NCBI GenBank assembly: GCA_048013815.1
Contig: CM106585.1
Coordinates: 6,882,001-6,946,000 of the forward strand
DNA length: 64,000 nt
Source of the DNA: Setoptus koraiensis
Taxonomy: Eukaryota > Animalia > Arthropoda
Direction: 5' to 3'
Below are positions 25,439-50,050 of the stretch, piece after piece. Under the pieces are notes generated by a model that searched no databases, was not told the DNA's origin, and saw only the letters and a list, made by a program, of their open reading frames with translations. The position numbers and the translations under genes were made by a program. Within the stretch, counting starts at the first letter, position 1. Each line of letters starts with the position of its first letter.

Positions 25439-26223
25439 CTGCAATTTTAATCGATCGACTCACCCAAATGTACTTTTTTATTGATTATTTTAGTTTATTT
25501 TTAGTTTAGTTTGCTTGTTTGTGTCGAAATAAACATGCATAAACGCGTGCAATTTCCATCATTTTACCTACGGTTATTCGCATGTGCTCGCCAACATGCA
25601 AGATTGCGATGCAAAATTTCCAACAAAAACTGTATGATAGACGACTGCTTATTTTACCGTAGGTGGTAAAATAAACTGTTTAATTTTGGTTTTTCGGTGA
25701 CTACAAATTTTGTCGCGGAGCGCCTCGAAGGCTCTCACTCTTTCACAAGGACGTACTAGGATCAATTGCTTCTGTTTATTCATCGTTTTGATCGTATGAT
25801 GTCTAAAAACTACCTTTAGTTGTCATATATGTAGAAATGTAATCACATCTTATGTATACGGCGCTCACGGGAACGCCTCAAGGTGAAAGAGAGGTTGTAT
25901 GGTTTGCGTTGCAGTTTCTTCGAATGGATAGTCAAAACTCCACTTTGTTCATGTTATAACAAAGGTTCAAATATTGAACAGAATTTATAGTTTTTATCAG
26001 CCCGATCAGAAGATAAAATAATTTGAAAATGTACTCACCTTTATGTCCTGCACAGGTATCGGTGCACTTGTAATCAGCTTTCGATTAGAAATTTTATCTC
26101 TGGCATGGATCGGATCTCTGAATTGTAGCCAGTTGAGATGAAAGAGTCACCATTATCGCAACGAGATCTTCAGTAGAGACACAAATCAACAAGTTGTTGG
26201 AAGCAGCGTGTTGTTTATCTATT

Positions 26224-26723
26224 NNNNNNNNNNNNNNNNNNNNNNNNNNNNNNNNNNNNNNNNNNNNNNNNNNNNNNNNNNNNNNNNNNNNNNNNNNNNN
26301 NNNNNNNNNNNNNNNNNNNNNNNNNNNNNNNNNNNNNNNNNNNNNNNNNNNNNNNNNNNNNNNNNNNNNNNNNNNNNNNNNNNNNNNNNNNNNNNNNNNN
26401 NNNNNNNNNNNNNNNNNNNNNNNNNNNNNNNNNNNNNNNNNNNNNNNNNNNNNNNNNNNNNNNNNNNNNNNNNNNNNNNNNNNNNNNNNNNNNNNNNNNN
26501 NNNNNNNNNNNNNNNNNNNNNNNNNNNNNNNNNNNNNNNNNNNNNNNNNNNNNNNNNNNNNNNNNNNNNNNNNNNNNNNNNNNNNNNNNNNNNNNNNNNN
26601 NNNNNNNNNNNNNNNNNNNNNNNNNNNNNNNNNNNNNNNNNNNNNNNNNNNNNNNNNNNNNNNNNNNNNNNNNNNNNNNNNNNNNNNNNNNNNNNNNNNN
26701 NNNNNNNNNNNNNNNNNNNNNNN
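26224..26723. other. Assembly gap (500 N)
   Basis: Run of N. The three track ORFs crossing it are artefacts. Confidence 1.
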
Positions 26724-26822
26724 CTACTTGCATTACACAGAAGTGTTTGAATTTCGCGATGAAGGCTTCATTGTAACCAACGAGGCAATTAGAGTAAGTC
26801 AGAAACAGGATCACAGATCGAA

Positions 26823-29800
26823 ATGAACTTTTCCAGGCTTGTGGAGGAAAAGCGGTCCTCTGAGGCCTCCAAGCCCACGATGGATGGACAAGTTTGGATC
26901 ATATTCAAGCATTTCTTCTTATTGAAGAGAAGACACTTCATTAGAACATTCCTGGAGCTATATTGTCCCATTTACCTAATTGGATTAGGTGTTTACTTCC
27001 TGATAACTCAGGAATACCGAAAAGCTCATGGACCTAAGGATTCTTTTACCATGGATGCACTTCCACCGATTATGGTGGGTGCATTATCTGCGCATTTCTT
27101 TTTTTCTATTGTTTGGCTCATCACTGAAAAATGCGACGGATTTCGTTTGCTCATGCACACAATGGGCCTCAAAAAATCCTCATACTATTTAGGTGTGTCA
27201 TTTGCAATGCTTTCGATATCATTGACAATTAGTATCATTGCTGGCTGTATACTTATAAATTTGGTCAGCGATGCACTTCAAATACCATTCGCAATATTTC
27301 CGTTGCTCTTCATAATTTACCCAATACAACTAACAAGCATAGTGTTCGCGCTGGGCAGTCTCATAAATTCACCATATCTATCTCTATTAACAATACTTTT
27401 ACCACCGATCGGCGTTGGGATCGACATCATGATATGCACTAGTTCTATCGAAAACATATTTCTTAAATTTATTCTTACGATTTTATCCCATATATCACCG
27501 TGGACGGCTACGAAGTCGATGCTTCAAGAAGCAAAACTATGGAGCGACACACATGGAGTTCATGTGCTCTGTGCAAATCCCTATCCGATCCCTCATTTTT
27601 TCAGTTTGCTTTTAATGATCCTTTGGTCAACAGTTATGTACTCATTTGCTTGGTATTTTGATTCCATATGTCCATGGCAAACACTGAAATCGCCAGAGCC
27701 TATATTATATTGCCGCAAGAAAAAAACTCAGCGTTCATTGAAGACCGATGAAGAACTGAAAGAAGTTACGGACCCTTTCGTTGGGCACGATAGAAATTAT
27801 TTCGAGCTAGCACCACAAAATAAACTACCGGGTATTTACATCGATGATGTAACAAAGCAATTTTCAGGTTCTGGAACTATCGTCGATTCGTTGTCACTGA
27901 GCGTATACAGGGGCCAAACAACATTGCTTCTTGGGCACAACGGTGCTGGAAAAACCACCCTGATGAACATGATCCTCGGCAATTTGGCGCCAAATCAGGG
28001 AAAAATCTACATAAATGGCTACGATATTGATACTTGCTCCGAGGATGCTCGCATTGGTCTCGGTGTGTGTCCCCAACAAAGTATATTGATGGAAAATTTG
28101 ACGGTAGATGAACACTTGTATTTGTTCGCCGGTATCAAATGCAACTATCGGGGCATTGTCAAACAGCAGCACATTGATGTGATTCTTCGAAATGTAGGAT
28201 TGCTCGAGCAGCGAGGCAAACTATGCCGCCGACTCTCTGGTAGTGAGAAACGGAAGCTCAGTCTTGCATTGGCCTTTGTAGGCGATAGTAACGTTCTTAT
28301 TTTAGACGAGCCAAGTTCTGGAGTTGATGCCGAATCTAGAAAATTTCTATGGGACATAATAAGAATGTATAGATCAAGTCGAACAGTATTGTTGTCCACG
28401 CAACACATGGAAGAAGCCGACTATCTAGGTGACAGAGTAGCCATTATGAGTTCGGGGAAAATAGTTTGCTGTGGCTCGTCTGTTTTCTTGAAGAAAGCGT
28501 TTGGATCTGCGTACAGGCTTCGGTTAGAATGCCTCAGAGGTAGCCACGACTCAGTCATGTCGAAAGTGTCCCATTACTTTCCGGTCGCCGAAATAGAGGG
28601 TTCGAAAAATCAAGTGAGCGCAGAGCAGAATTCGCAATATCTCGACACCATTGTCAAGCTCATACCCAGCGGCAGTAACGATTATGATGATCAGCTTATT
28701 CAATTGTTAGACGATCTAGAGCAAAACCACACAAGTTTGGGAATCAAGTCATTTGGTCTGAGTTGCTCAACAATTGAGGACGTGCTTCTGAACTCAGCGA
28801 AAACTTTCAGTACCCCATGGATTCAATCAGATGAAAACATAGCTAACGAGCTGGAAACCTTAACTAGCAAAATTTTCGTCGCCGGGAAATTCAAGCAAGA
28901 AGACAACCCGAGTTTATTTTTTTCGGAGATGCCATTGATACTCATTAAGAAACATTTCACAGAGGCTCACCGAAGCATTTGGTCAGATCTATTTTGGCGT
29001 TTCATTCTGGCTGCAATTGTCCTGTACTTAACGACAGTGGTACTATTCACTCTTAGAGGTTCTGTGGGAATATGGTTTAACTTTTTCCCGCTTACTATTT
29101 TGATGGTCAGTTTCATCAGAAATCCCTTGACTGAGAAAACTAGCAAATTCAAGATCATACAATTATGCTCTAAGGCAACCTATTGGCACTATTGGTTTTC
29201 ACGATTCATCATGGACCTTGTGTACGTCATATTGTGCTCATTTATTCTCATTCCTTGCATCAAGTTTGTATTTGGAGCAACAATGGCAGATTTCGGTTTC
29301 ATCTTCTTATTGATGATGCTCGTATTATGTGCTGCCTTATTGCTGTTGGCATACATATTGTCAACCTGTAACACAAATCTATTTACTGGTGTTTTAATTT
29401 ACATAATCCTGTTGCACACGCACAAGGTGATGTTATTTTCAATTGCCATTTTTCGACTTTTTATAACCAATCTGAATGACGACCTTATACAGGATTTAAC
29501 TATTGATAAACACTGCTCTGGCCTCTATTATGTAATTCCAACCGTGACTGCTGAATGGACAGTGGTACATGGTTTCAAAGAGGCTGAGAACAATGTCAAT
29601 GCCATCGCATGGCAGGGTTTGATTGTTATATCAATGCAATCGTTGGCGTTTGCAATTATCCTAGCCTTAGTAGAGAGAAAGCGAGTGAATCTTCTCGGTT
29701 TTCTTTCGCCGCGCTTATATTTTACTGACAAGAGGCCCAGTGGCTTGGAAAATTTGGACAAGGATGTAGCCAATGAGAGAATCAGGGCAACGAATATCAT

Positions 29801-32998: not shown

Positions 32999-33193
32999 AT
33001 GATGAATAATTCTTTCGTTGTATGTCTCTGCTTGTTCGCTTTCCTCCTGGTAGCCACACCGGATATAATACAACCATGCTATGGACAAGATCTTACTGGA
33101 GGACTTAACAGACTTATAGAGACTCTTCTTAACTCTATAGATGAGGCACAAGTACAAACAATCAATGGCGTACAAGCGCTAGGACGCAAATAG
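32999..33193 (+). CDS. Small secreted peptide precursor, copy 1 (64 aa)
   Basis: Signal peptide MMNNSFVVCLCLFAFLLVATPDIIQPCYG shared with two paralogues, conserved leader DNA, and C-terminal GRK. Confidence 0.8.
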   Translation: MMNNSFVVCLCLFAFLLVATPDIIQPCYGQDLTGGLNRLIETLLNSIDEAQVQTINGVQALGRK

Positions 33194-33462
33194 TCCATCT
33201 CTGATCAATCATCAGCTGACCAACTAGCAACGAAATGGTTCGTCACAGACGCGAAAGATCTACAAATATACATACGCATATATGACGGAACTACTCTTAG
33301 ATTTGGCCGGCTAAATATGAAATAAAAAACACAACTAGGTTGTAGCAGAATCAAGATTGAAGATTGAAAATTAATGAGAGTGAGTCTGCGACTGGGGGCC
33401 AATTCAATTCTGTTGGATTCTGTCGGATGTGTTCTGTTCTGTTGCTTCTCTCGATACATTTC

Positions 33463-34445
33463 ATGGGTGTTCTTGCGATTAGGTCCCCACTCAGATTTCG
33501 ATGAAACTTCACACATGGGTCCCGTAGGGGCCCCATATCATGGAATGAGTAGACCGGAAGCCAGGAAACCTCCGGTTCCGGAGTTACTAAAAGATTGAGA
33601 TAGAGCTTTGAAAATTCATAATCGGATAGATGACGCCTAGCGGAGCACGATGAAATCAAAATTAATCTTCTGCCACTTCCGGTTACCTAGATATAGCTGT
33701 TTAACGCAAAAAAGGGTGTGGCCGGGCCCTGTGCGGTCGCGATGAGCGGACCCATCCTGTGCCTCGTGCGCGCAACACCCTGTATCCATGTCTGTTTCGG
33801 TCATTTTAACCCTGAATATCAACGAATTAGTGTGATAATAAAATTTGAGATGAAAATTATTACAACAAATGGATGGATAAAGTGTCCTGGTGTAGCATTC
33901 ATCTCATTATGTCTCCAATCCAGTTGTTCCTACTTGTCTCATCCTTATTTTTCATTCCCCCCTTCATTTGTGTATGGATTGCAGTCATGTGAGCGGAGGG
34001 TAGAGGGCGCAGCCCGATACCCGAAGCGCTCATCAACCCTACCCGAAGGGTTCCCGTCGCACGCAGTCGTCGCGGTAGCGACGACGGAGATGTTACGGCC
34101 TCCAGCGTACGAGGCCGCAGGCCGAGTTCTCAGACACACCGCATGTGCATCCCTGAGCGCAGCGAAGCAATAATTTGGTCACTTCCGGTATTCTAGACCC
34201 AGTAATATCTCTATATCTCGGAAACCGGAAGTCGCACAGAGCTGAAAATTATGTCATCGTGTTTAGCGTAGCTTGAAACGTCTGTGTAGTGAATTTCAGA
34301 GCTCTAGCTTTAACTTTATGTAAAACCGGAACCGGAAGTTTCCTGGCTTCCGGACCACTTTTTTCGTCTTAGTTAGGTCAGAATAGACCTATACCGGAAG
34401 TTTCATCAAGATCCGGTTGGGGACCTAATCGCTAGAACAACCCAT
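33463..34445. mobile_element. Foldback/MITE-like element with long imperfect inverted arms (about 33463-33696 and 34211-34445)
   Basis: ATGGGTGTTCTTGCGATTAGGTCCCC versus GGGGACCTAATCGCTAGAACAACCCAT. ACCGGAAGCCAGGAAACCTCCGGTTCCGG versus CCGGAACCGGAAGTTTCCTGGCTTCCGG. It interrupts the homology between peptide repeat units. No TSD identified. Confidence 0.6.
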
Positions 34446-35530
34446 TTCATAATTTGAAATTTGAAGGAATAAATTCAAATTATCAGGGAGCGGAGACAAA
34501 TGAAATTCCAACTCAAGAGGTGAGCTGCGCGATCCTCACAGACCAAATTGTTTCGCTTTTCACCTAGACAGGGATTTTGTCATCCTTACTCACAGCGGCA
34601 ATCATGACCGTTTATGATCGACAGTTGGCTTGATATGTAGTCACATCTAGGCAACCCATATCGGCTCTGTTTGGACCTGGGTGGTCAATTTTCGCCAGCT
34701 TATGATTCATGACAGCTCGGTGTTGGCTCGTTCTGGCAATTAGAGGTGCGCTCGGATATCCACGGCGGATATCCGATCTGTTTTGAAAAAGATTTCGGGT
34801 GTTGTTCGGAATACGTACCAAGCCCAATTTCCTTCAAACTTCACACATGAGCCCCGAAGGGGCCCCAAAGAACAAATAAAGTGGTCCGGGAGCGCGGAAA
34901 TTTCTACTTCCGGAGATATAGAAAAATGCCTTTTTCGGGTCTCAGAGGGGCCTCAGATTTCAAATTTTTGTATGATCGTCTAGATCCAGATGCTATCTAT
35001 GTGAAAGCGTTGAGATAAATCTTTTACATCAACTCGTTCGCGAGCTATTCCACAATAAGTGCACGTCACACTTCCGGTTCTAAAACTGATTCGGCTGTAC
35101 TACCAACTAGTTACGGTCTCTAAAGCAAGTTCACACCCTATATGAAAGAAACCCGGCCCGATCACGGGCCCCGCCCATTCGACTCCCAGTCCTCGGGAAG
35201 AATCTTTTTTAGTTTGGTGGCCGTCAGTCGTCCCGCCGGAGGCTTCATGTTGACTTGCCATTGACAGATAACCGGCTTAATTGATCATTTGTATCACTTC
35301 AAGAGTGATAATTATGTTTGAACGTCATCTAGTGCTTGTATAATATGCTAAACTAACTTGTCAAGCATGCTATTGACACAGATCAATGCCTAGAGTGACA
35401 CCAATCTATGCAAAAGAGAGCTAATTTAGCTTTGGAACATGTTAGTCCAACAAGTTTGCACACGAGCATGAGTGAAAAAATGGCGCAAAATTTTGTGCAA
35501 CATTACTATTCAATACTATTGTATGCGACT

Positions 35531-35635
35531 ATTGTAATGTATTTATACTAAATTGTAATGTATTTATACTAAATTGTAATGTATTTATACTGAATTGTAA
35601 TGTATTTATACTAAATTGTAATGTATTTATGCTAA
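35531..35635. repeat. Tandem repeat, 5 x 21 bp (ATTGTAATGTATTTATACTAA), enclosed by a 19-bp inverted repeat (35526-35544 / 35634-35652)
   Basis: Read directly. Units start at 35531, 35552, 35573, 35594 and 35615. Confidence 0.95.
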
Positions 35636-35640
35636 ATACA

Positions 35641-35904
35641 TTACAATAGTCGTACTACAAATTGTTGTAGTGCTTCGATCGCAGCAACCTGTAATCGGTA
35701 TCCACGAAATTTTTCGTTTTCTTGAAAAACTTCTCTAACTAACTTGAGGGAGTCCTTCCTTGGGATCTCAATGTTTGTCGTATTTTCGAGATATTGGATT
35801 TTTTTTAGGAATAGTTTCTTCCATCTACGATCTAGCCTTTCTGCCATTTCTTTTCTTGTTTCGGTTCTAGAGGTTGACATTTTTGCTGTTTTCGGTCTAA
35901 CCAT
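35641..35904 (-). CDS. Highly divergent, C-terminally truncated histone H3-like protein (87 aa) with Met at the K9-equivalent position; may be a pseudogene
   Basis: ATG in an ACCATGG context. [21 protein letters not shown] aligns to [65 protein letters not shown] aligns to [43 protein letters not shown]. Confidence 0.75.
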   Translation of the reverse strand: [87 protein letters not shown]

Positions 35905-35958
35905 GGTTGTTAAAAATGATTTTCTTTGTTGATAATGTAATAATATACTAATATATCT

Positions 35959-36564
35959 ATGATAGTGTGTATAATATAATGTGGTGGATACGATGTTTCT
36001 TCGATTCGACGGGAGAGAAGACGACAACAACAAGACGATCCTGACAGATATCGGAACGAAACAAATCGTCATGGTCTTGTTGTTCGAATAAGACTCAGAC
36101 CATCATGTCCAGAATGTCGTCATGACATCAAAGCTGTTTATTCTTTGAGTCTAGAAGAAGTCGAGCCCGATCCTGAGTTAGAATTGGGGCAGAACGAGCT
36201 ACAAGAACAGGGGCAAGTAGAGCCACAACAGGTGCAAGAAGAACATCAACGGGTGCAAGAAGAGTATCAACATGCGCAAGTTGAGCGCCAAGAACGAGCT
36301 CAAGAAGAGATAGCAAACCAAGAAGAAGAGATTCGAAACCAACAAGATAGGATTGAGCAACAACGAGATGGTCGTCCACATTCGGTAGTGATCTTGGAGT
36401 CGCTTGGAAGAGGTATAAGCATAAAACATCTCACCCGATTCTCTGACAACAGTGAGAGATGGATGCCGAAATCCTTGATTGAGACCAGCGAAGCCTGGGC
36501 CGAATGGCAACGGACCAGAGGCCAAAGAAACATGAGACATCACCGAGCGAGGAATCAAAATTGA
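35959..36564 (+). CDS. Half-RING (CPECR) / E-Q-rich coiled coil / chromodomain-like ORF; ATG 35959 is followed by an in-frame TAA at 35977 and the frame is then open 35980-36564; possibly decaying
   Basis: The track ORF 36145-36564 extends upstream in frame through RPSCPECRHDIKAVYSL. The C-terminal VVILESLGRGISIKHLTRFSDNSERWMPKSLIETSEAWAEWQ resembles a chromodomain. AATAAA motifs near 36644-36664. Confidence 0.5.
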
Positions 36565-37688
36565 TGTCGAAAACAAACAACGACAACAACAAATTAATGT
36601 GCACAACAAACAACACCACCAATTAATGTCAACAACAACAAAAAATAAAAACTGTATTAATAAACTAACATATTGTGTCGTCTTTTCTTTTTATTCCTAT
36701 TTAATTCCTATCTCGACGCTAACATTCTCCCGACGCTAACCAACTGTATCTCGACGATTACATTCTGCCAACGCTGACATAGTTTCGACGCTGACATAAT
36801 CCGTGGATATTCATCTGTTTTCACGGATATGCATGGATATCCGTGATTTTTTCTAAAATTTTCGATCCGTCCGTGGATAATCCGCGCTTAAATTTTGCGA
36901 TCCGAGTCCGCCGCGGACGGAATTTTTACGGGTAATTCGCGGATTCGGATCGGATCGCGCATCTCTACTGGCGATACAACCAAATCAACTTCTAAACGTT
37001 TCTTCACTTGTCAGAGGCTTGTCTCGCTTCACCTGATTGTCTGATCTTATCACTAGGGTACTCAACAGTGTTAATGGGACAGGATTATAGTATGTTTATT
37101 GCGATGAAAAAAATGCTTGCACAAATGATCTTTAATTGCACCTTCACCCTTCACTGTATCAATAAAGATTGCACCTACTTATTTGTCACTCGTTGTAAAA
37201 GCAACTGTCACATGCTCTCTGACAAAATGAAAGTGATTAAGATGGCCAAACAATAGCCTGCATGCAATTGATACCTTCCATAAATTCGGCACAAACAAGC
37301 GAATTATATCTAGTTTACTCATGTGACCATTGTGTGGCGCTTTGAAATTGAAAGTTTTCAACAGTCGAAAAAGGATTAGATTTATTACATATGCGGGCGG
37401 CAGGCACCAAGTTTTACTTTAATCGGGGTTTGTCATAAATCCCAACAAATGTTCGACTATCAATTGTAAGTAATTAAAAATCATTTATTGTGACACTGAT
37501 TGTCGCAGTCTCAATATTCGATTCAGAGTTTCTCGATGGATAGAAGGTATTTAAACTCTCTGTTTTACTCTCTGGCGCCATCAGTCAATAACTTACCTAA
37601 CAAGTGTAATCAGCTTCAAATAAGTCATTTATCGAATAACATAACTCGCAAGACACAAAACCATCCAACCGGCCGTATCTATCCGAAC

Positions 37689-37889
37689 ATGATGAATAAA
37701 ACGATTGTAGGTCTTTTCTTGTTCGCTTTGCTCCTGATCGCAACACCCAATTTGATACAACCATGCCTTGGGCAAGGACTCGATGAAGGAATAATTCCGG
37801 GTTCATCGGCTCTTATTGATGCTTTACTGAATGCAACGGAACAAGAATTGGATAATAGTCTCGCTGGTCCATCCGGTATGATCGGTTGA
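37689..37889 (+). CDS. Small secreted peptide precursor, copy 2 (66 aa)
   Basis: True start is the ATG at 37689 inside track ORF 37500-37889. Signal peptide MMNKTIVGLFLFALLLIATPNLIQPCLG, and C-terminal Gly. Confidence 0.8.
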   Translation: MMNKTIVGLFLFALLLIATPNLIQPCLGQGLDEGIIPGSSALIDALLNATEQELDNSLAGPSGMIG

Positions 37890-38521
37890 TCGGATAATCA
37901 ACTCGCAACAAGATGCTTCTAGCCGTAAAAGATCTATATCCTACAACAACTCTTAAAATTTGCTTGCTGAACACAAAATAAACAACAAAACCATGTTCTA
38001 GCAGAATCAAGATGGAAGATAGGAAATGAGCGAGAGCGACTTTGCGACTGGAGGCCAATTTGATTGTGTTAGATTGTTGATGTCAACTAATGTCAAAATG
38101 ATAACAGAACCATAAATAGTAAGAAAACGAATCATAGGATGAAAGTTTTGCTTTTGTGGCGTCTTATTGTTCGTCTAATTAGCTTCATATATGCGCCGCA
38201 ACAAGACTACCCCGTTAGTGTCCGGCGGCAACGATGCGAGCAACTACAGCCAGAGTGAGTCTCAGAGTTACGTAACGCGATCGTCTTATGATGGATCTTG
38301 ACAGATAGAAATATCACGAATGCATATTTTGCACATATTTGCACAACGGCTGAATAATAAATTCTCGAGTGCGTCTGCATGATATGATAAGATCGCAAAT
38401 GAAACATGTTTTGGCACAATATCTAATGATTGATAATAATTTACACTATATTTAGCGGTTATAAAACTACAAAAGTTGCACAAGTGCACAAAAATGAATG
38501 AAATTGAAATAGGAATAGGAA

Positions 38522-41218: not shown

Positions 41219-44200
41219 TCAACCGCGATCACTGCTGCCGATCACTTCCGGTTGCTCGCAACACAACTCCAGACGCCACAGGCTGAAGCTGCCGTCACTG
41301 CCTGAGCTAACGAAATGCCTGTCGTCGCTCAAGAATCTCACCACCACGGCCGGTTGCGACGAGTATCGTCTCTCGTAGAAGCCCATAGTTTTTGACCGAC
41401 ACGGGTACCTGAACAGGCGCAAGTGTCCGTTACCGTCGCTGGCCACGACCAGTTTTTTGTTGTTTGATACATGACAGCTCATGTTGACCACGGTGAGCTG
41501 GTGTTGTTGTTTGTCTGCTGTTGTCGCTTGAAATCGGTTGTTGCTGTCGCTTAAATTGAGATTGTCGTTGTCCCAAATAGCGCGAACATTCTCACTGGCC
41601 GAGCATGTCGCATTGAACCATTCGATGTCCTGGGGTATTTTGCTCTTTTTCATGTACCGGAAATTGCACAAATCCCAGAGAATGAGCTCTTGGTAGTTGT
41701 TGTTGTTGATGGAGGTCAAAATGAACTGATTGTTGTCGCTGAACTGCAGACTCACCACCGGATACGGGCTCTGATTATATATGAATATATTATATTGCGG
41801 ATAATCGAAATTGGGAGACGGTCAATAATGAGCGAGCGAATCAGCGCATCGATACAGGCACATATTTGTCAGTATACATATATTATCATTATTTGTCAGT
41901 GTGCGTATATTATCATTATTTGTCGGGATATTCTCACTATCTCAATTATCAAATATATTGCGAAAATATCTTGGGGGTTACTCACCTGGAATATGGACAC
42001 CTTCTTGTAGGCGCGGCCCTGCTCGTACACGGGCAACACAAATATGCTTCCGTTTGCGCATCCGGCCGCCAGCAACGAGCCGTCGCGCGAATACTCCAGA
42101 CATCCAATGCAGACCGGCGTCAACGGGAAATAGCTGCACAGCGACCCGTCCGACGTCTGAATGATGTAGACGGTGCCGTCGAGCGAGCCCGACGCTATCA
42201 CCTGGCCGCCGCAATGTATCGCAATGGTGCTGCACTCGGACGGTATGAGTGCCGTCCACACCAGTTGTCGGGCCGACCATTTGCAGATTTTGCGGTCCCG
42301 CGAACAAGTGAAATATCCGTCCGCAATGACGGGATCGGGCACCAGGTCGGCGACAAGTGTCTCATGGCCCTCGTAAACGACACAATAGTCGCTTTGTTTG
42401 CTCGCCCGAAGCACGTCGCCCACAAGTATGACGTTGCGCGTTGTGGCCACATACACCCGCATGCTGGCGGGGGGCGCGTTACTGTCTCCAGAAGTCTCCC
42501 TGTCCAATGTGCCGCTACAACAGTTTGCCGGCCTCGTAGCGGCCGATATTATGCAACAAATGGCCCCCATTTCCTCGGGCAAGCGAACAGCGTTGACGCA
42601 CCGGTAACTGGCGCCCTGTATCTGACTGGCGGCCGAGGTGTGATCCGTGCGCTTGCCCGAAGCGGTGGTCGCTAGCGACCATGTGCGCAAGGTTCCGCTT
42701 GCGTCGCCCGTCATCATGACACTATCGCCCACCACTAGAATGCAGCTTATTGGGGCCATTCGACCGGTTTCTGGCCCGCCCACCATTCGACCGGTTTCTG
42801 GCGGGCCGCCCACCAATTGATCGGTGAGCGTGCCGATGGTGTCGGTGGCGGTGTGCGCCGTGAGCAACTGCTGGCCGCTCGCAACAAAACTGACCACCTT
42901 GTATGTGACCGTGGCATGCGGTTGTGCCCTGGCAAACGGGCCGGCCTTGGACGGGCTAGAGCCGGCCGGCACGGACGTCTTAGCGGGACTTGGGGGCGAC
43001 ACAGTGGACGATTGGGTCCACACGCTGACTCGCCCGTCCTGGGCACCGACGAGGTATTTGTCCGGGCCGACACAGGCCACACAGTTGGCCTGGGCGAGGC
43101 TGTTGAGATTGAGGCGCGTTAGCACGCTCAACGACACCAGTTTGCTTTGTTTGTAGTCGATTTGCCACAGGCTCAAATGGCGTCGCCCGAACGTTACCAA
43201 ATGATGCTCGCGATACGGATGTAGCAACACCTGAAGTACCTGTTCGCCGCGGCTCAGAATCTTGGTCACCTTTATCGAGCTGACGGGCACGGGCGGCGGC
43301 TTGGCGGGCGCACTTGTGGTTGCCGGTGTCGGGTTGCTCTGGCCGGTCTCTGTCGGGCCGGTTGCGGCGCGCTGCCCGAGCAAATCGGACAGTGGCCAGT
43401 GGAACAGGTAGAGCGCTAAATGATGTATGTCGCGACTGGCCACCGCCAATTGTGTGACGCTAAGCGACAAACTGAACAGCTGGGCGCCCAAAAACGATTT
43501 TTCGCTTATTGTCATGAGGGTGGTCAGAGTGTCTATGCACCAAACGTGAATTTGGGGTCGCCTGTTCAATTGATCCTCTACCTGGCCACTGGCCGCAATC
43601 CTCGCCTGCGCGCTACACGCCCACGCGGACGGCGGGCCGGCGGCCGAATCCGCATCGAGCCCGTGCGCCCAATCTACCTGTTGACAGCTGCTGGTCAGCT
43701 GTTGCTGGCTGTCAGACGCTAAATGGGGGGCGCTGCCTGCTGTCACATTGGCCGCTGGACATTTGACAACTGTCAGACAACAAACGTCGCTAGTGTGCGC
43801 ACTGTAGTAGCGCTGGCTGTTCTTAGAGCGATTCCACAATATCACCAGCGCCCCTATAGGATAAATCAATTCGTTGTCGGCAAAATGGAGCCAATTTGAG
43901 TAGCGCTCGTTTGGCTCAAACAAGCTACTCGCTGGCCAAATACTGCTGCCCCCTGTTTTGGGTGTGTTCAACTTGCTCGCCCTATAAGCAGAGCCTGTAT
44001 TTATTCCACTTCCGCTTCCGGTCGCATCTCCCATCTCAAGCCATCTCTGCTGTTGCTGTTGGTCCGCTGCCAAATTGTGGGCCAAATGCGGGGCCGGCCG
44101 CCAGTCGTCGTTGATGCAAAAGCCGTGCACCCATTGCAGGCTGAAATTTTGGTCGGGAATTGTGTCGCCCTGACACGCGAATCCTTTAACCTCGCGCGCC

Positions 44201-47200
44201 AACTGAGTTAAGGTCTGGCTGGCACCGGAAGTGATGCTCGCTTTGCGCCAGTTTGTCTCAAGTCCGGATACAATTTGCACTTTGTCTCTGTCTTGTTCGT
44301 GGCCACTGTCATCCGCCAGTTGACGTTGTTCAACTGCGATCAATTGCTGCGACCTTTGGCTCGCTGCGGTCAGATGTGCGCCACCGTCGGTCTCACCCGC
44401 ACCCGACGCGTCACCGCTCGCTGCGCTCCGCGTTTCCGGTCTGTCATACGGCCGCACTTGGTTGCGTTCGATTCTGACAGTGTTGTCGTCAGCGGCTGCA
44501 GACGCGTGCCCGCCCCTCTGAGGGGGCTTGTCATGGGTCACGGGAGAGGTCAGAGTCACAATGTTTCGCACTCGTTCGTTTGCCATATTCTGACTCACCA
44601 CACTCTCGCTGGGAATCTGTTTTCGGGAATATTTGCCGCTCCTGCCTTCGGTTGCACCGGCCCGGCTCTTTGCCGGACTCTGCCCGGATCCCGTCGTGGG
44701 CGCCGCCTTTTGCCTGGCGTTGGCAGGCTGTCTGGCGCGCGTGGGTTGTCTCTGCCTTGTGCTTGCACCCGTACTGACCGTCCCGACCGTCCCGACCGTA
44801 TCGCCTTGTTGGGCTTGGTTGGGGGTGTGGTGGACGAAGCGGTCGCTGGCCAGTTCGTTCACCTGTCGCATCTCGCTGTCGGACAATTGTTGCTCGCTCA
44901 CTGTTATAATGGACTCGTTGGACTTGGTGCGCTCCATTGGAAAGCGCACCGGCAGGTCAACCAGGTAGCCCTGCAGCGATCGATTGGTGCCTATCTCGAT
45001 CGATTTGTTAGTGGCGGCGGTCGCCATTTGGCCCGTACGCTGGGCGCCCGCTCGGGCAGTTCGCTGGCCTGCGCCATGGCGTGCTGGCTGTCTCGCTGTG
45101 CCGTGATTGTTGGCCGCGACGGCCAGCACCCTGCAATGCGTATCCGGCTCGGGTGGCAGTTGTCGCTGAGTGGACACAACGACAAGATCTTCCTTGAAGG
45201 TCACTCTGGGTTGAACGCGCGTCTCCGAGCTACTGCGCACCAGAGCCCGGCTCCTCGTGTCACTTCCGGTTATTCTTGCGGGGCTCAGTTGCTGGCCCTG
45301 TCTAGTATTGGCTGCGAATTCATCGTTTGTCACACACAAAAGTGTCTCGTCTACTGACGCTCGCGCCATTGCTTGCGACGGGCGCCCGCTGTTACAGTGA
45401 TTGGCGCTTGCCAGACATTTGGGCGCCCTCGAGGCGCTCACAAGCTCCAATTGAGGAGCGGACACCATACGAATCAGCTTAGGGTCCCTCTTTCTCACCG
45501 TTGTCGTCTTATCCGCTGCAGCGCCAACAACTAAACTCGCTCTCCGTTGCTGCCGATTGTTTTCTTGTCTCGGGTCCAACTTGCCGGCCGTGCATAAATG
45601 GCCGCCGGCCGTCTGCGACTGTCTGTTCGAGTGATCGGCCGGGCCGGCCGGCACCTTTGACGGGCTCGTTTGGCGGGCCCTGGCCTTGGCCGTGCGCTGT
45701 TGAGATGGACTTTTCGCTTGCATGCTTTGCTTGATGGGTCTCACTGGCGACCTCTGCGTGGGCGATTTGCCCTTGGCCGGGCTGCTCTTGTTGTCGAGCT
45801 TGCTGTCAAGCTTGCTGTGACTCGATGCCGCGAGTGACGAGTCACGACTTTTTACCGCCGGGCCGCCGCTGCAGCCTATGGTGCTGGCCGAGTGGGGCGC
45901 TGTGTGGAGAACTGGACGAATATAATCACTTCTGTCTGGTCTAACCTCAAATTTGGCCAACTCTATAGGCGAAACCGGCGACTTTATCTGGCTGCTTCTG
46001 GCCAATGACGGCTGCTGCTGCTGCTGTTGCTGTTGTGACGGCTTCGGTTCCCTTTGGTCCGTTTCATCCGGTGACTTATGCGCCGGCGACGGCTTGGCAG
46101 TGCCGTTGTTGTTGATGTTGTTGTTGTCTAGATCACTGAGCGCTGTCCGCGGCGACTCCGGCCGTTCGCCTATGTTGTTGCAGGGTGTCTGCGTCGACAG
46201 GTCGCTCGTCGGGCCCGCAATTAGCGGGCCGTCGACGAGGAAATTCTTGCAAGTGTCCAGTTCCTGTTGCAACTGGGCACAATTTAGAACGCGCCTCAGA
46301 TCGTCGGTGTACAATTTGCACACCAGCGCCATACCGATGGCGCCCGCAAATTCGGCCAGCAATTGCTCGAACGACGATTGCTTGCTGGCCACGTATTGCC
46401 TATTTAACCAAATGTTGGCCTTCCTTTTAGGATTGTGATAATCAATTATGCATATTTGCACCGTTGCCACCGTTGTCTGTTGTTTGTCTTTATTATTAAT
46501 TGTCTCGCTGGCATTGGCATGATCGTCGCCCCCATGATTCCGTTTGGCCAGTCGCCTCAGCACACTGGCCTCCTGGCGACATGCTAGTTCCTCACCTGTT
46601 CGCTTGCTGCCAACTTGCTGCTGCTGCTGATGATGCTGATGGTACAACGGTGACACGGAACAGGTCGTCATTTCCGGTGTGAGGGGGCCCGCCGTGTAAG
46701 TGTGAGTGACGGGCGACCGTTGGCCAGCGCCGTTGGCGTTGGGCGCCATTGCGGCCACGCCAATGAGATAATTTGATTGAAAATCAAAGTAGCGCGTTCC
46801 CGAGACAATGTAGATGGCGTTGTGTTGTAACTCGCTCACACTATACAACAATTGACCCTCGTTGTTAAACAAATATCTTGCGCCGCCTTGAATAATGAGC
46901 CGGCCATTTATGTAGTCCAACAGGCGATTCAGATCAACAAATTCGTTGTCGCGCAAACTGATACGAAGCGGCTTCTCAAACGGAAGTCCGTTGCTGTAAA
47001 TGGTCAATATTTTGGCCCGATGGAGCGTGTCGCGTGACCGGCTCATTCTGGCGCTGCTCGCGCCACCTGACAATGGCGGCAGCAATTGTTGCTGCTGCGG
47101 CAAGCCGCCAAAACCCACCAGCGGTTTGCCCGACCGGTAGCTGGCAGTCGGTGCGGTCTGCGTCAAATTGGAGTAGCTACCGCCGAGTCGCTTCCGGTTG

Positions 47201-48675
47201 CTCGTAAGTCTGCTCTGCTGGCAGCTTGTGCTGGCTGTTAAATGGGGCAAATTTGGCCTCTCGTCTGGCCTTGCCTGCCCAGATTCCCGTCCGATGCTGT
47301 CGCGGCTGTTATTCAGGCAACTCCAGTTGGCATAATCGCGATTCAGGTCCACATACAACAGATCGTTATAGTTCAAGTTGGTGCTGCTGTCGTTCAGACA
47401 GCAACTTGATAAACTCTGGCGCCTGTTGTTGGCGTCCCACGCCACTAATACCGGCCCGCTTGAGCGTGTGTGTCCGGCCCCGGCCCGGGCAATCTGACTG
47501 TGCCCCGTCGAGTCGCCGGTGAAATTGCTGACAGCTCGCTGAGGCCTGTTGACAACTGTGGGCAATGTTGTCAGTTCACTATTTCTCTTTCTGGTTAACT
47601 GGGTCGCCGTCGGGCTAACTCTGTGCCAATCTGTCGCGTTATTGTTGGCATGCTGGCCGTCGTTAATTAGCGCCCTGTCACTATCGCTGTCACTATCACC
47701 TGTCGTCCGGTATTTGTGGGCTTTCGCTCTAATGGTGGGCGATTTTGATCTAGTTTCGCTGCATTTGTTGCGTTGTGACTGTGACTTGTTGTGTATTTTC
47801 GATGCTCTGTTTTTTCGTCGCTTCGATTTGGTCGTCGTTTTAGTTGCGCTCAACGAGTTGCAGCCACAAGTGTGAAGCTTCAGGTCACTGTCGGTGATAA
47901 TTTGGTCTGATTGGTGGTGCCCATGGCCGGCATGGCTGCCACAACTGCTGCTTGCTGTGGAATCACTGGGCAAACTGAGGAAGAATCCGTTATTCTTATC
48001 CGTGTCATTGTCGCTGGTGGCCGCTATCAGCGCAGCTCTCTTATTATCCGCCTGTCTCAATTGTCTCCGATTTTTCGCCTTCTTCTTGATCGTCTTTCTC
48101 ACCGGGCCACCACTGAGCTCTTGTTTACAACTATTACAATTGGTATTAGTATTATTATTTTTTCTACTATTGGCCGAGGGCGACAACAAAAGCTTGCTCG
48201 GTCTGGCCAGTGGCTCGTGCTCTGACACGCCACCCTTGTGATAGTCTATTTGTGCCAATGTTCTGTCGCCAATATGAAAATATCTGATGGCCTCCCTGTC
48301 TAGAATGTCGTCGTTTGAGTCGTCACTTGTTTGTCTGTCGTTGTTGTTGTTGTCGCTGTTTGGGTCACTGTTGTTGTTGCTGCTTCTGCCGATAGTCTTG
48401 GCAAATTTTTGCTGCTTGTCAGTTGTCTTTACCGCTACTGCTGCTGCTGCTGATACATTAGCTGCTCGTGTATAATCTTTGCTGGCGGCTGGATAAAATG
48501 TCTGATATCGTTCGCTCATCGACGATTTTCTTCGCGCCAATTGTGGCGAACGCGACTGATCGATTGTGACAGGTTGCTGCTGCTGCTGACACATGTCTGA
48601 GGCCCGATGTTTTGACTGGGCCACGAGTGACAACTGGTCGCCATGGCAAACAAAGGGCCCATTGTCATTGTCCAT
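41219..48675 (-). CDS. DCX-EMAP: Doublecortin-domain echinoderm microtubule-associated protein-like (DCX-EMAP), 2413 aa; exons 48675-41986 and 41770-41219
   Basis: First ATG at 48675. Two DCX-like domains (RAKILTIYSNG...GARYLFNNEGQLL and VQICIID...LVCKLYTDDLRRV), a HELP motif (FSLQWVHGF), WD40 repeats, and an EML-type end GHLRLFRYPC...VRFLSDD. A phase-0 GTGAGT..CAG intron gives 7242 nt in frame. Confidence 0.85.
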
Positions 48676-50050
48676 TGTTGTTATTGTTGTCGCTATACGC
48701 AAATAGGCTATGGCACAAATAAAGTTGCTGCTATCAATCTATTCGTCTAGTCGTCGTCTGATAGTCACAATAGTATCACTGTCCGTCTGTCTATAATTAC
48801 TTGTCATCTCTTGTAAGGGTTGTTTGCAAACAATGGAGCCCCTTCTCAATTGGTGCACCTTTACTTTGGCACTGGTGCTGTTGCTGCTGCGGTCGCTCAC
48901 ATAAACTCTTGTATTATCACTCAGATCGTACAATAAATTGCTGACTAGTTAACAGAGACTCAAGTAGTAAAAAAAGTCAACTCTCCCTCTAGCGAATTGC
49001 GTAACGCGTAACAGACATACAAGCGAGCGGGTTCAGATATGACATTTGCGAATACGACACCATAGACAGAGATAGAGACACCGGACAGAGAGGCCATTGG
49101 CTTTTCGACGTGGTCAACCGTTAACGGTGAATTTATTCAGAGCGCCAGCGAGGTTCACAGACAGCGCAGCGTAGAGTTTATTCAGTTTTATATTTATATA
49201 TATAATATTTATATAATTTTGTATGACATACACAGACACATGGATCCCCTTTTGGGGCGTGCCGGAATAAACAGCAACGGACAGCAAACTAGAGGAAAAA
49301 ACTAAAAATATTCATTGCGCACAATTGGCTCAAAAAAATGGTTACCTGACGTTAGCTGCGCTGGCGCGCGCTTACGTAACAACCAACGACACGGGCACAC
49401 AAATAACAAAACAAATGGTCGGTGGCAATTAGTGGCCCCCCACACCACACACACAACTCACACTCAACTGGACACTGTGGAGTGGAGTTAGTTAAAAGTT
49501 GATAGCGGTAGTGGTGACCGACCACTACTAATAACCACTTACTATATGGTGCCATGATTATTACTATATGTTAATCACTTGCCCGCGGGTTAATTACTTG
49601 GCCCAAAATGTGCGTGCCTCTCCCTCTTTTACCTGACTTGTGCGGTAACCTGGTGGCGGTAACTGAATACCGAGTGAATACTACCACACTGAACAGGCTG
49701 AAAACTCCTACGCTTTTCCCCTGCGCCACGCTACTTATTATATCATGTGGCTGTATCACCGGTAGATATCTGCTAGTGATATGGTCAGTTGATATAAAAT
49801 GCTCGTGATATTTAAACGCCGCCATCGCCGCTATGCGCCACCATCATCACAATTAGTGGTGCACTATTAATGGCAAGCTAGATGGCGAGCTGGCTGGCTG
49901 CTACTGCTGATGCTGTTGTTGTTGTTGGTCGTGGTGTGGGCCGAATAATCATTGCGACCGCAATGGGGACCTAGTTACCGATGCGCCGCCATGATATTGT
50001 TTCGCCCGCCGAATCAACCACTGCCAGCGAGCCCAGCCGGGACAGACAAA

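Follow-up and report, generated by a model that had tools for sequence, protein, structure and literature searches.

The 64,000-nucleotide stretch of the Setoptus koraiensis genome analysed here (NCBI GenBank assembly GCA_048013815.1, contig CM106585.1, positions 6,882,001 to 6,946,000 of the forward strand; hereafter the window, whose own numbering is used throughout) contains a non-autonomous cut-and-paste DNA transposon of the hAT type, 2227 bp in length, at positions 34741-36967. It arrived in one step, has no transposase, is a mosaic inside and carries a cargo that is single-copy. Our reading, which we consider probable, is that of a hAT element with an Ac-like target that was inserted into intergenic DNA as a single unit, segregates as presence and absence and holds a mosaic of passenger sequence. 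An initial annotation, made from the letters of the window, had described a Pack-hAT cassette with a divergent pair of chromatin-related genes inside; a transposase-less hAT-like element with an H3-like piece is what we find, and the divergent chromatin gene pair is not.

Evidence for insertion as one unit comes from sequencing data. The stretch is contained in six public runs, and we compared it with the contigs of four of these (X1, X2, X4 and X5, drawn from three studies), all of them assembled contigs. In all four runs a joint from 34740 to 36977, with a single G between, was detected beside the filled form, such that the empty contig reads ...CTGGCAAT-G-CAACC... and the window reads CTGGCAAT-[element]-CTGGCGAT-A-CAACC. 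As the empty contigs are without all of 34741-36975 and have kept one 8-mer, this interval must have been inserted, or be absent, as one unit. The empty-site contig of run X5 is 1419 nt long with flanks that are 6-8% different from the window, and it therefore represents a diverged haplotype. A second empty form was also present, which joins 34740 to 37033 via 16 letters, and as these letters match window positions 36976-36991 with two changes, this is the same empty site with a 41-bp deletion. The deletion in this haplotype corresponds to 36992-37032.

The depth of the filled, first empty and second empty forms was 105:59:281 in X1, 103:99:398 in X2 and 22:78:34 in X5, and these run-to-run shifts in the ratio of filled to empty sequence are a better fit to alleles in pooled populations than to fixed paralogs. 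The element is polymorphic, being on one haplotype and missing from others, and the lone 8-mer, which bears no scar, suggests a site that was never occupied. The initial annotation had suggested a search for an empty site and had named the lack of one as grounds for rejection, and one with a single CTGGCAAT and no element is thus found in the contigs of four runs and on two empty haplotypes. As a separate observation, the divergence between haplotypes is unusually deep at this intergenic locus, with both flanks (34446-34740 and 36977-37115) differing by 6-8%.

The element is bounded by 11-bp terminal inverted repeats (TIRs), with TAGAGGTGCGC at 34741-34751 on the plus strand and gcgcatctcta, reverse complement TAGAGATGCGC, at 36957-36967 on the minus strand. 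These are flanked by two copies of a target site duplication (TSD) of 8 bp, of which the left, CTGGCAAT at 34733-34740, is the 8-mer present once in the empty-site contigs, and the right, CTGGCGAT at 36968-36975, is read in both the sequence and the contigs and has one change relative to the left. The boundaries first proposed, with 11-bp TIRs, an 8-bp TSD and 2227 bp between, were accordingly reproduced, with 10/11 inverted identity between the TIRs and 7/8 identity between the TSD copies. Beyond 10 of the first 11 bases there is no further inverted similarity between the two ends, and in run X5 a 1075-nt contig terminates exactly at 36967.

We also scanned the window for 11-nt inverted pairs with up to one mismatch, spaced 300-5000 bp apart and flanked by 8-nt direct repeats with up to one mismatch, disregarding an artefact of the N run at ~26231-26716. 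With no rule imposed on the termini this yielded eight pairs, and since ~0.7 such pairs arise per shuffled window, a TIR and TSD alone constitute weak evidence. When the termini had to follow YARNG, that is (T/C)A(A/G)NG, one pair was left in the window (34741/36967), with none in 30 shuffles. Furthermore, the two ends share a family of subterminal motifs. Motif counts showed two palindromic CGGATATCCG-type motifs in the left subterminal region (34752-34797), while the right subterminal region (36796-36956) is rich in CCGTGGATA, GGATATCC and CGGAT. Across the 238 terminal bp we counted 16 GGAT/ATCC motifs where 1.3 would be expected (Poisson P ~1e-12), which upholds the GGAT-rich subterminal repeats of the initial annotation. 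For CGGAT/ATCCG the count is 12 in the ends and zero in the 1989-bp interior.

The target consensus of Ac-type hAT elements is nTnnnnAn, to which CTGGCAAT conforms with T as its second and A as its seventh base. Duplications of 8 bp are also made by P and Merlin elements, although their termini differ. Judged by its sequence features, namely the 8-bp TSD, the TAGAG terminus, the clusters of subterminal motifs and the nTnnnnAn-type target, the element would fit the hAT superfamily and its Ac-like subgroup. No transposase domain was detected in any open reading frame (ORF) inside the element, as had been claimed before.

The interior of the element is a patchwork and not a deleted transposase gene. 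Its first component, at 34798-35243 (~450 bp), is a fragment of a very high-copy foldback repeat, whose copies start with GGGTGTT, and which was delimited from contig depth, loose contig ends and similarity. Summed contig depth over 34820-35240 reaches 100-700x that of single-copy sequence, and loose contig ends at 34827, 35088/9, 35142 and 35243 mark repeat borders. Likeness to the neighbouring foldback element had been noted before and is borne out, with 70% identity between 34792-34918 and 33458-33586 in the left arm of that element. The neighbouring element itself spans 979 bp (33465-34443), starts with GGGTGTT, has 57-nt inverted arms (79%) and has ATTTCAT on both sides. Contigs over its right part (34300-34403) sum to >1000x single-copy depth, and the foldback family is therefore a very abundant repeat of this genome. 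Scans of 33000-38000 against Rfam and for tRNA genes yielded no tRNA gene and, from Rfam, two matches that were both sub-threshold, and thus there is no sign of an origin like that of a short interspersed nuclear element (SINE) for the high-copy piece.

Unique sequence separates the foldback fragment from a 21-bp minisatellite at 35510-35652 (repeat families D1 and I1), in which five units and then an inverted one make up a hairpin-capable junction. In contigs of three runs we observed a joint that goes back 258 positions, from 35510 to 35253, pointing to a variant in some haplotypes with the unique interior part duplicated in tandem. Beyond the minisatellite lie an ORF on the minus strand (35641-35904), an AT-rich 75-bp spacer (35905-35979) that holds the ATG at 35959, a long open frame on the plus strand (35980-36564) and a block of CGACGCTRAC(AT) subrepeats at 36709-36795 (repeat family D2), the last of which matches the distinct subrepeat reported earlier near 36710-36800.

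Copy number differs between the ends and the middle of the element. Summed depth is several times single copy in the bin 34716-34819, which takes in the left end together with 22 bp at the start of the foldback repeat, and ~5-10x single copy over the right subterminal region in three of the four runs (X1, X2 and X4). By comparison, 35988-36795 is covered by one contig at a depth equal to that of the unique flanks (105.7 in X1, with zero differences), or ~1x. The ends are therefore members of a small family, whereas the cargo has not been amplified and, being ~single-copy, shows no sign of travelling with these ends elsewhere.

The minus-strand ORF (35641-35904, 87 codons) appears to cover the tail, alpha-N, alpha-1 and part of alpha-2 of an H3-type histone, as indicated by Pfam, PDB sequences and a language-model Atlas. 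Its match to the Pfam Histone family (PF00125) has an E-value of 4e-4, aligning ORF residues 8-83 to profile positions 15-87 of 122, which agrees with the H3-like label given to it initially, though the score of 21 bits is under the gathering score of 26.4. Searching PDB sequences gave an unrelated Cas protein as the top match, and 26 of the 29 weak matches were H3 or CENP-A chains, all colinear, with ORF residues 30-83 aligned to H3 residues 45-97 (E 0.09-4). Likewise, in the Atlas search Histone clusters took all of the ten best places, with a score of 0.90 and 173-189 shared features. By eye, residues 1-21 show the pattern of the H3 tail, in the form R-x-K-TA-K/R-M-ST...RK-x-M/L-A, with a Met in the position equivalent to Lys9. 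These 21 residues alone found no H3 match among PDB sequences. A word-index protein search with the ORF returned nothing, and exact-sequence look-ups of its versions (87 and 143 aa) and of eight neighbouring ORFs found no entry in the collection. The AlphaFold single-sequence model is a generic three-helix bundle with a pLDDT (predicted local distance difference test) of 68, and searches with this model using Foldseek against the PDB (best E 2.9) and VIA-align in wide mode (best Z 7.3, sigma-factor-like helices) did not list a histone and are uninformative. On these sequence similarities we regard a true H3-family origin of the ORF as quite likely.

The similarity to H3 breaks off midway through alpha-2, exactly at the start of the inverted minisatellite unit, and the rest of the histone fold (its C-terminal third) is absent from the downstream minus frames. 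The ORF does not have a complete histone fold that scores above the PF00125 gathering score, and it is a truncated, probably H3-derived fragment, not an H3. Furthermore, in run X2 the sole contig over 35814-35976 carries K8R, one synonymous change, M20R and a 7-nt deletion; 21 codons into this variant frame there is a stop, and what is left of the fold-like part lacks an ATG. There are 4 changes in 91 nt in this variant part, compared with 2 in the adjoining 874-nt contig. Run X1 contains a second sequence form of 35756-35963, and in run X4 the match of a 1977-nt contig to the window is confined to 35783-35976. This latter segment is made up of codons 1-40 of the H3-like ORF and the 72-bp spacer, and the contigs hint at a second genomic context for it, possibly that of the parent locus or else of a sibling element.

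On the plus strand, the ATG at 35959 was initially taken to start the second gene of the pair, but a TAA closes its frame after just six codons. The long frame instead occupies 35980-36564, and is an orphan of 194 codons with a Q/E-rich heptad-repeat middle derived from 21-nt repeats, and with no in-frame ATG until ~codon 165. A 51-nt GT..AG intron at 35965-36015 is possible on paper and would splice the ATG at 35959 in frame to this long frame. The length of the frame was reached in 5/1000 dinucleotide shuffles of the element and in 1/1000 local shuffles, it has two differences in run X2, both synonymous, and AATAAA signals are found at 36644 and 36659, 3' of its stop. The codon-usage scores of the two frames are 0.07 and 0.045 per codon, compared with 0.10-0.30 in the recognisable genes of the window.

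This plus frame had also been described as half-RING/chromodomain-like, for which we obtained no support. Comparison with Pfam gave no family, with RING and Chromo absent even at E-values of up to 10, and comparison with PDB sequences gave no relative and no chromodomain chain. The eight-ligand Cys/His cross-brace of a RING is missing, with a single CxxC knuckle found in the frame, and with neither a Pfam Chromo match nor a PDB chromodomain chain there is no chromodomain identified by these searches. The frame has no word-search match and no Atlas neighbour, and an exhaustive phmmer search against 1.84 billion representatives gave 0 matches at E 1e-3 or better. AlphaFold modelled with confidence only a coiled-coil helix at residues 82-131, equivalent to the 21-nt (7-aa) repeats, while the C-terminal 60 residues have no strands and a pLDDT of 33-49, making the model uninformative for a chromodomain there. 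A literature search for a link between mites, RING-chromodomain proteins and transposons returned nothing relevant. We also considered a divergent H3-H4 histone pair as the source of the cargo, and this was rejected as the plus frame is not H4-like.

These observations can be brought together in a model of how the element arose. Its mobilisation in trans would have depended on an autonomous hAT element able to recognise TAGAGRTGCGC ends and clustered (C)GGAT(A) motifs. Template switching in the course of gap repair may have filled its interior, as happens in Ds derivatives and elements of the Pack type. The filler would comprise a piece of the abundant foldback repeat, the minisatellite, the 5' two-thirds of an H3-type coding sequence and a lineage-specific coiled-coil frame. 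Both frames are most likely passengers, one being a truncated H3 pseudogene or fragment and the other an orphan ORF or decayed gene piece, because the X2 contig has a frameshift and M20R, codon scores are low, and the plus frame has neither an opening ATG nor relatives.

A number of points weigh against this interpretation. We identified no autonomous partner and did not directly see a second copy flanked by other TSDs, with the rest of the genome not searched, and as the read evidence is all from assembled contigs it is incapable of showing expression. The H3-like ORF keeps its ATG, its H3-like tail and its open frame in the haplotype of the window, and the frameshifted X2 contig may come from a paralogous copy of the sub-region and not from this element. 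In addition, the plus frame may be real coding sequence, now or recently, because it is longer than expected by chance, its differences are synonymous only and two AATAAA signals follow its stop.

Of the other explanations, the one that survives best is that the cargo came from another mobile element, as a decayed accessory cassette that was nested in or copied into a short hAT miniature inverted-repeat transposable element (MITE), and not from a host gene. Nesting of the cargo in a short hAT MITE was the alternative given in the initial annotation, and on this point the empty site tells us only that all sequence between the ends goes missing together. Part of the interior certainly belongs to another repeat family, the ends are multi-copy around a unique middle, and the CPxCR knuckle and W-x-P-x3-L stretch of the plus frame recall RING and chromo motifs by eye. 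However, there are no internal TIRs and TSDs that frame the cargo, the failure to detect RING or chromo signals with Pfam extends to E 10 and the exhaustive phmmer search was empty, and we consider this origin unlikely.

The initial annotation had proposed a two-component anti-silencing module, which in its fullest form would be a functional head-to-head pair, with a fold-truncated H3 decoy and a coiled-coil partner expressed from a shared 75-bp promoter and blunting silencing by H3K9 methylation. The head-to-head arrangement of the two frames is consistent with this, as are the ATG, the open frame and the tail-like first 21 residues (by eye) of the H3-like ORF, and the greater-than-chance length and purely synonymous differences of the plus frame. 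On the other side, the tail alone matches no H3 in the PDB, the H3 is truncated, the plus frame lacks a RING, a chromodomain, any homolog and an opening ATG, codon scores are weak, the frameshift with loss of Met20 is the sole form in run X2, and a single-copy cargo has not spread with the element. As a functional chromatin module the two frames are thus unlikely, the transposon-borne anti-silencing pair is unsupported, and the full gene-pair model appears to us very improbable. A more specific version, proposed by analogy, is still harder to credit: that a working soluble, fold-truncated histone decoy with Met in the place of Lys9 might act through 'oncohistone'-like K-to-M inhibition of SET-domain methyltransferases, together with its divergent coiled-coil partner, weakening H3K9-methylation silencing at the locus or genome-wide and so protect the transposon. 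If true, no earlier K-to-M histone mimic would have been encoded by a transposon. Finally, least probable is that the ends are two separate short elements, or a chance pairing, with 2.2 kb of ordinary intergenic DNA between, a reading that could draw on the ~0.7 unfiltered TIR and TSD pairs per shuffled window and on inverted similarity limited to 10 of the first 11 bases, but which is close to refuted by the loss of 34741-36975 all at once with one 8-mer kept in two different empty haplotypes, and by enrichment of the same motif family at both ends.

Our preferred interpretation, a non-autonomous hAT element with passenger cargo, places it among several known systems. It resembles Ds-like, non-autonomous hAT elements of the Ac type in its 8-bp TSD, short TAGAG TIR, clusters of subterminal motifs and absence of transposase, and also in its insertion polymorphism and a target that follows nTnnnnAn. 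It differs from these in that inverted similarity extends over 11 bp only and the interior is not derived from a transposase gene by deletion. Hypomethylation activity has been demonstrated for VANC of the Arabidopsis VANDAL elements, which are Mutator-like, autonomous and multi-copy; here the likeness is in idea only, that of a transposon-borne protein countering host silencing, and VANC has no sequence or domain relation to the present cargo.

Gene-fragment-carrying hAT elements are known in plants as Pack-TYPE elements (PMC8903248). Like the transduplicating Pack-MULE, Pack-CACTA and Pack-hAT elements, the present one is bounded by TIRs and TSDs, is non-autonomous and probably has foreign coding fragments inside, whereas in contrast to the plant elements one cargo copy was seen, capture from a host gene would be the presumed route and the parent locus was not found. 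We regard it as an ordinary Pack-type element: the kind is already known, and it is the host that differs.

The closest parallel for the histone piece is in fungi, where hAT elements with 8-bp TSDs captured histone H3 in Pseudocercospora fijiensis, with H3-capturing hAT elements also in five further genomes of Cercospora, Pseudocercospora and Sphaerulina, and with H3 amplification known in Pyrenophora tritici-repentis (PMC6710886). The initial annotation could name no described hAT carrying an H3 mimic plus a chromodomain; for the H3 part it has been overtaken by this report of hAT-captured and amplified H3 in several fungi. These Dothideomycete elements share with ours the hAT-type ends, the 8-bp TSD and, quite likely, an H3-derived sequence, which is partial in most of the fungal copies. 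They are, however, 9.5-kb elements of an autonomous type with a transposase domain, present in tens or hundreds of copies that are mostly mutated through repeat-induced point mutation (RIP), whereas the present element is 2.2 kb, has no transposase and a single-copy cargo, and contains a far more diverged H3 (21 bits against Pfam Histone).

That this hAT-type element is still polymorphic in this genome makes fairly recent activity probable. It would also represent a further case of DNA transposons shuffling coding fragments, here a piece of H3, outside plants and fungi.

The neighbouring genes in the window are eukaryotic with long exons, and encode an ABC transporter, a P4-ATPase and an EML-DCX protein; a bacterial-type promoter scan was set aside as irrelevant to this eukaryotic sequence. 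The N run at ~26231-26716, which is either an assembly gap or masked, lies just upstream of the 1351-aa ABC-transporter ORF, and it gives rise to artefactual ORF entries at 26194-26826. Further along, 41896-48702 on the minus strand is a single ORF, open over 2268 codons, that contains EML beta-propeller and doublecortin domains. It lies in a block with a GC content of 54-59%, compared with ~40% in the first 42 kb of the window, and the switch between the two is sharp, at ~42 kb.

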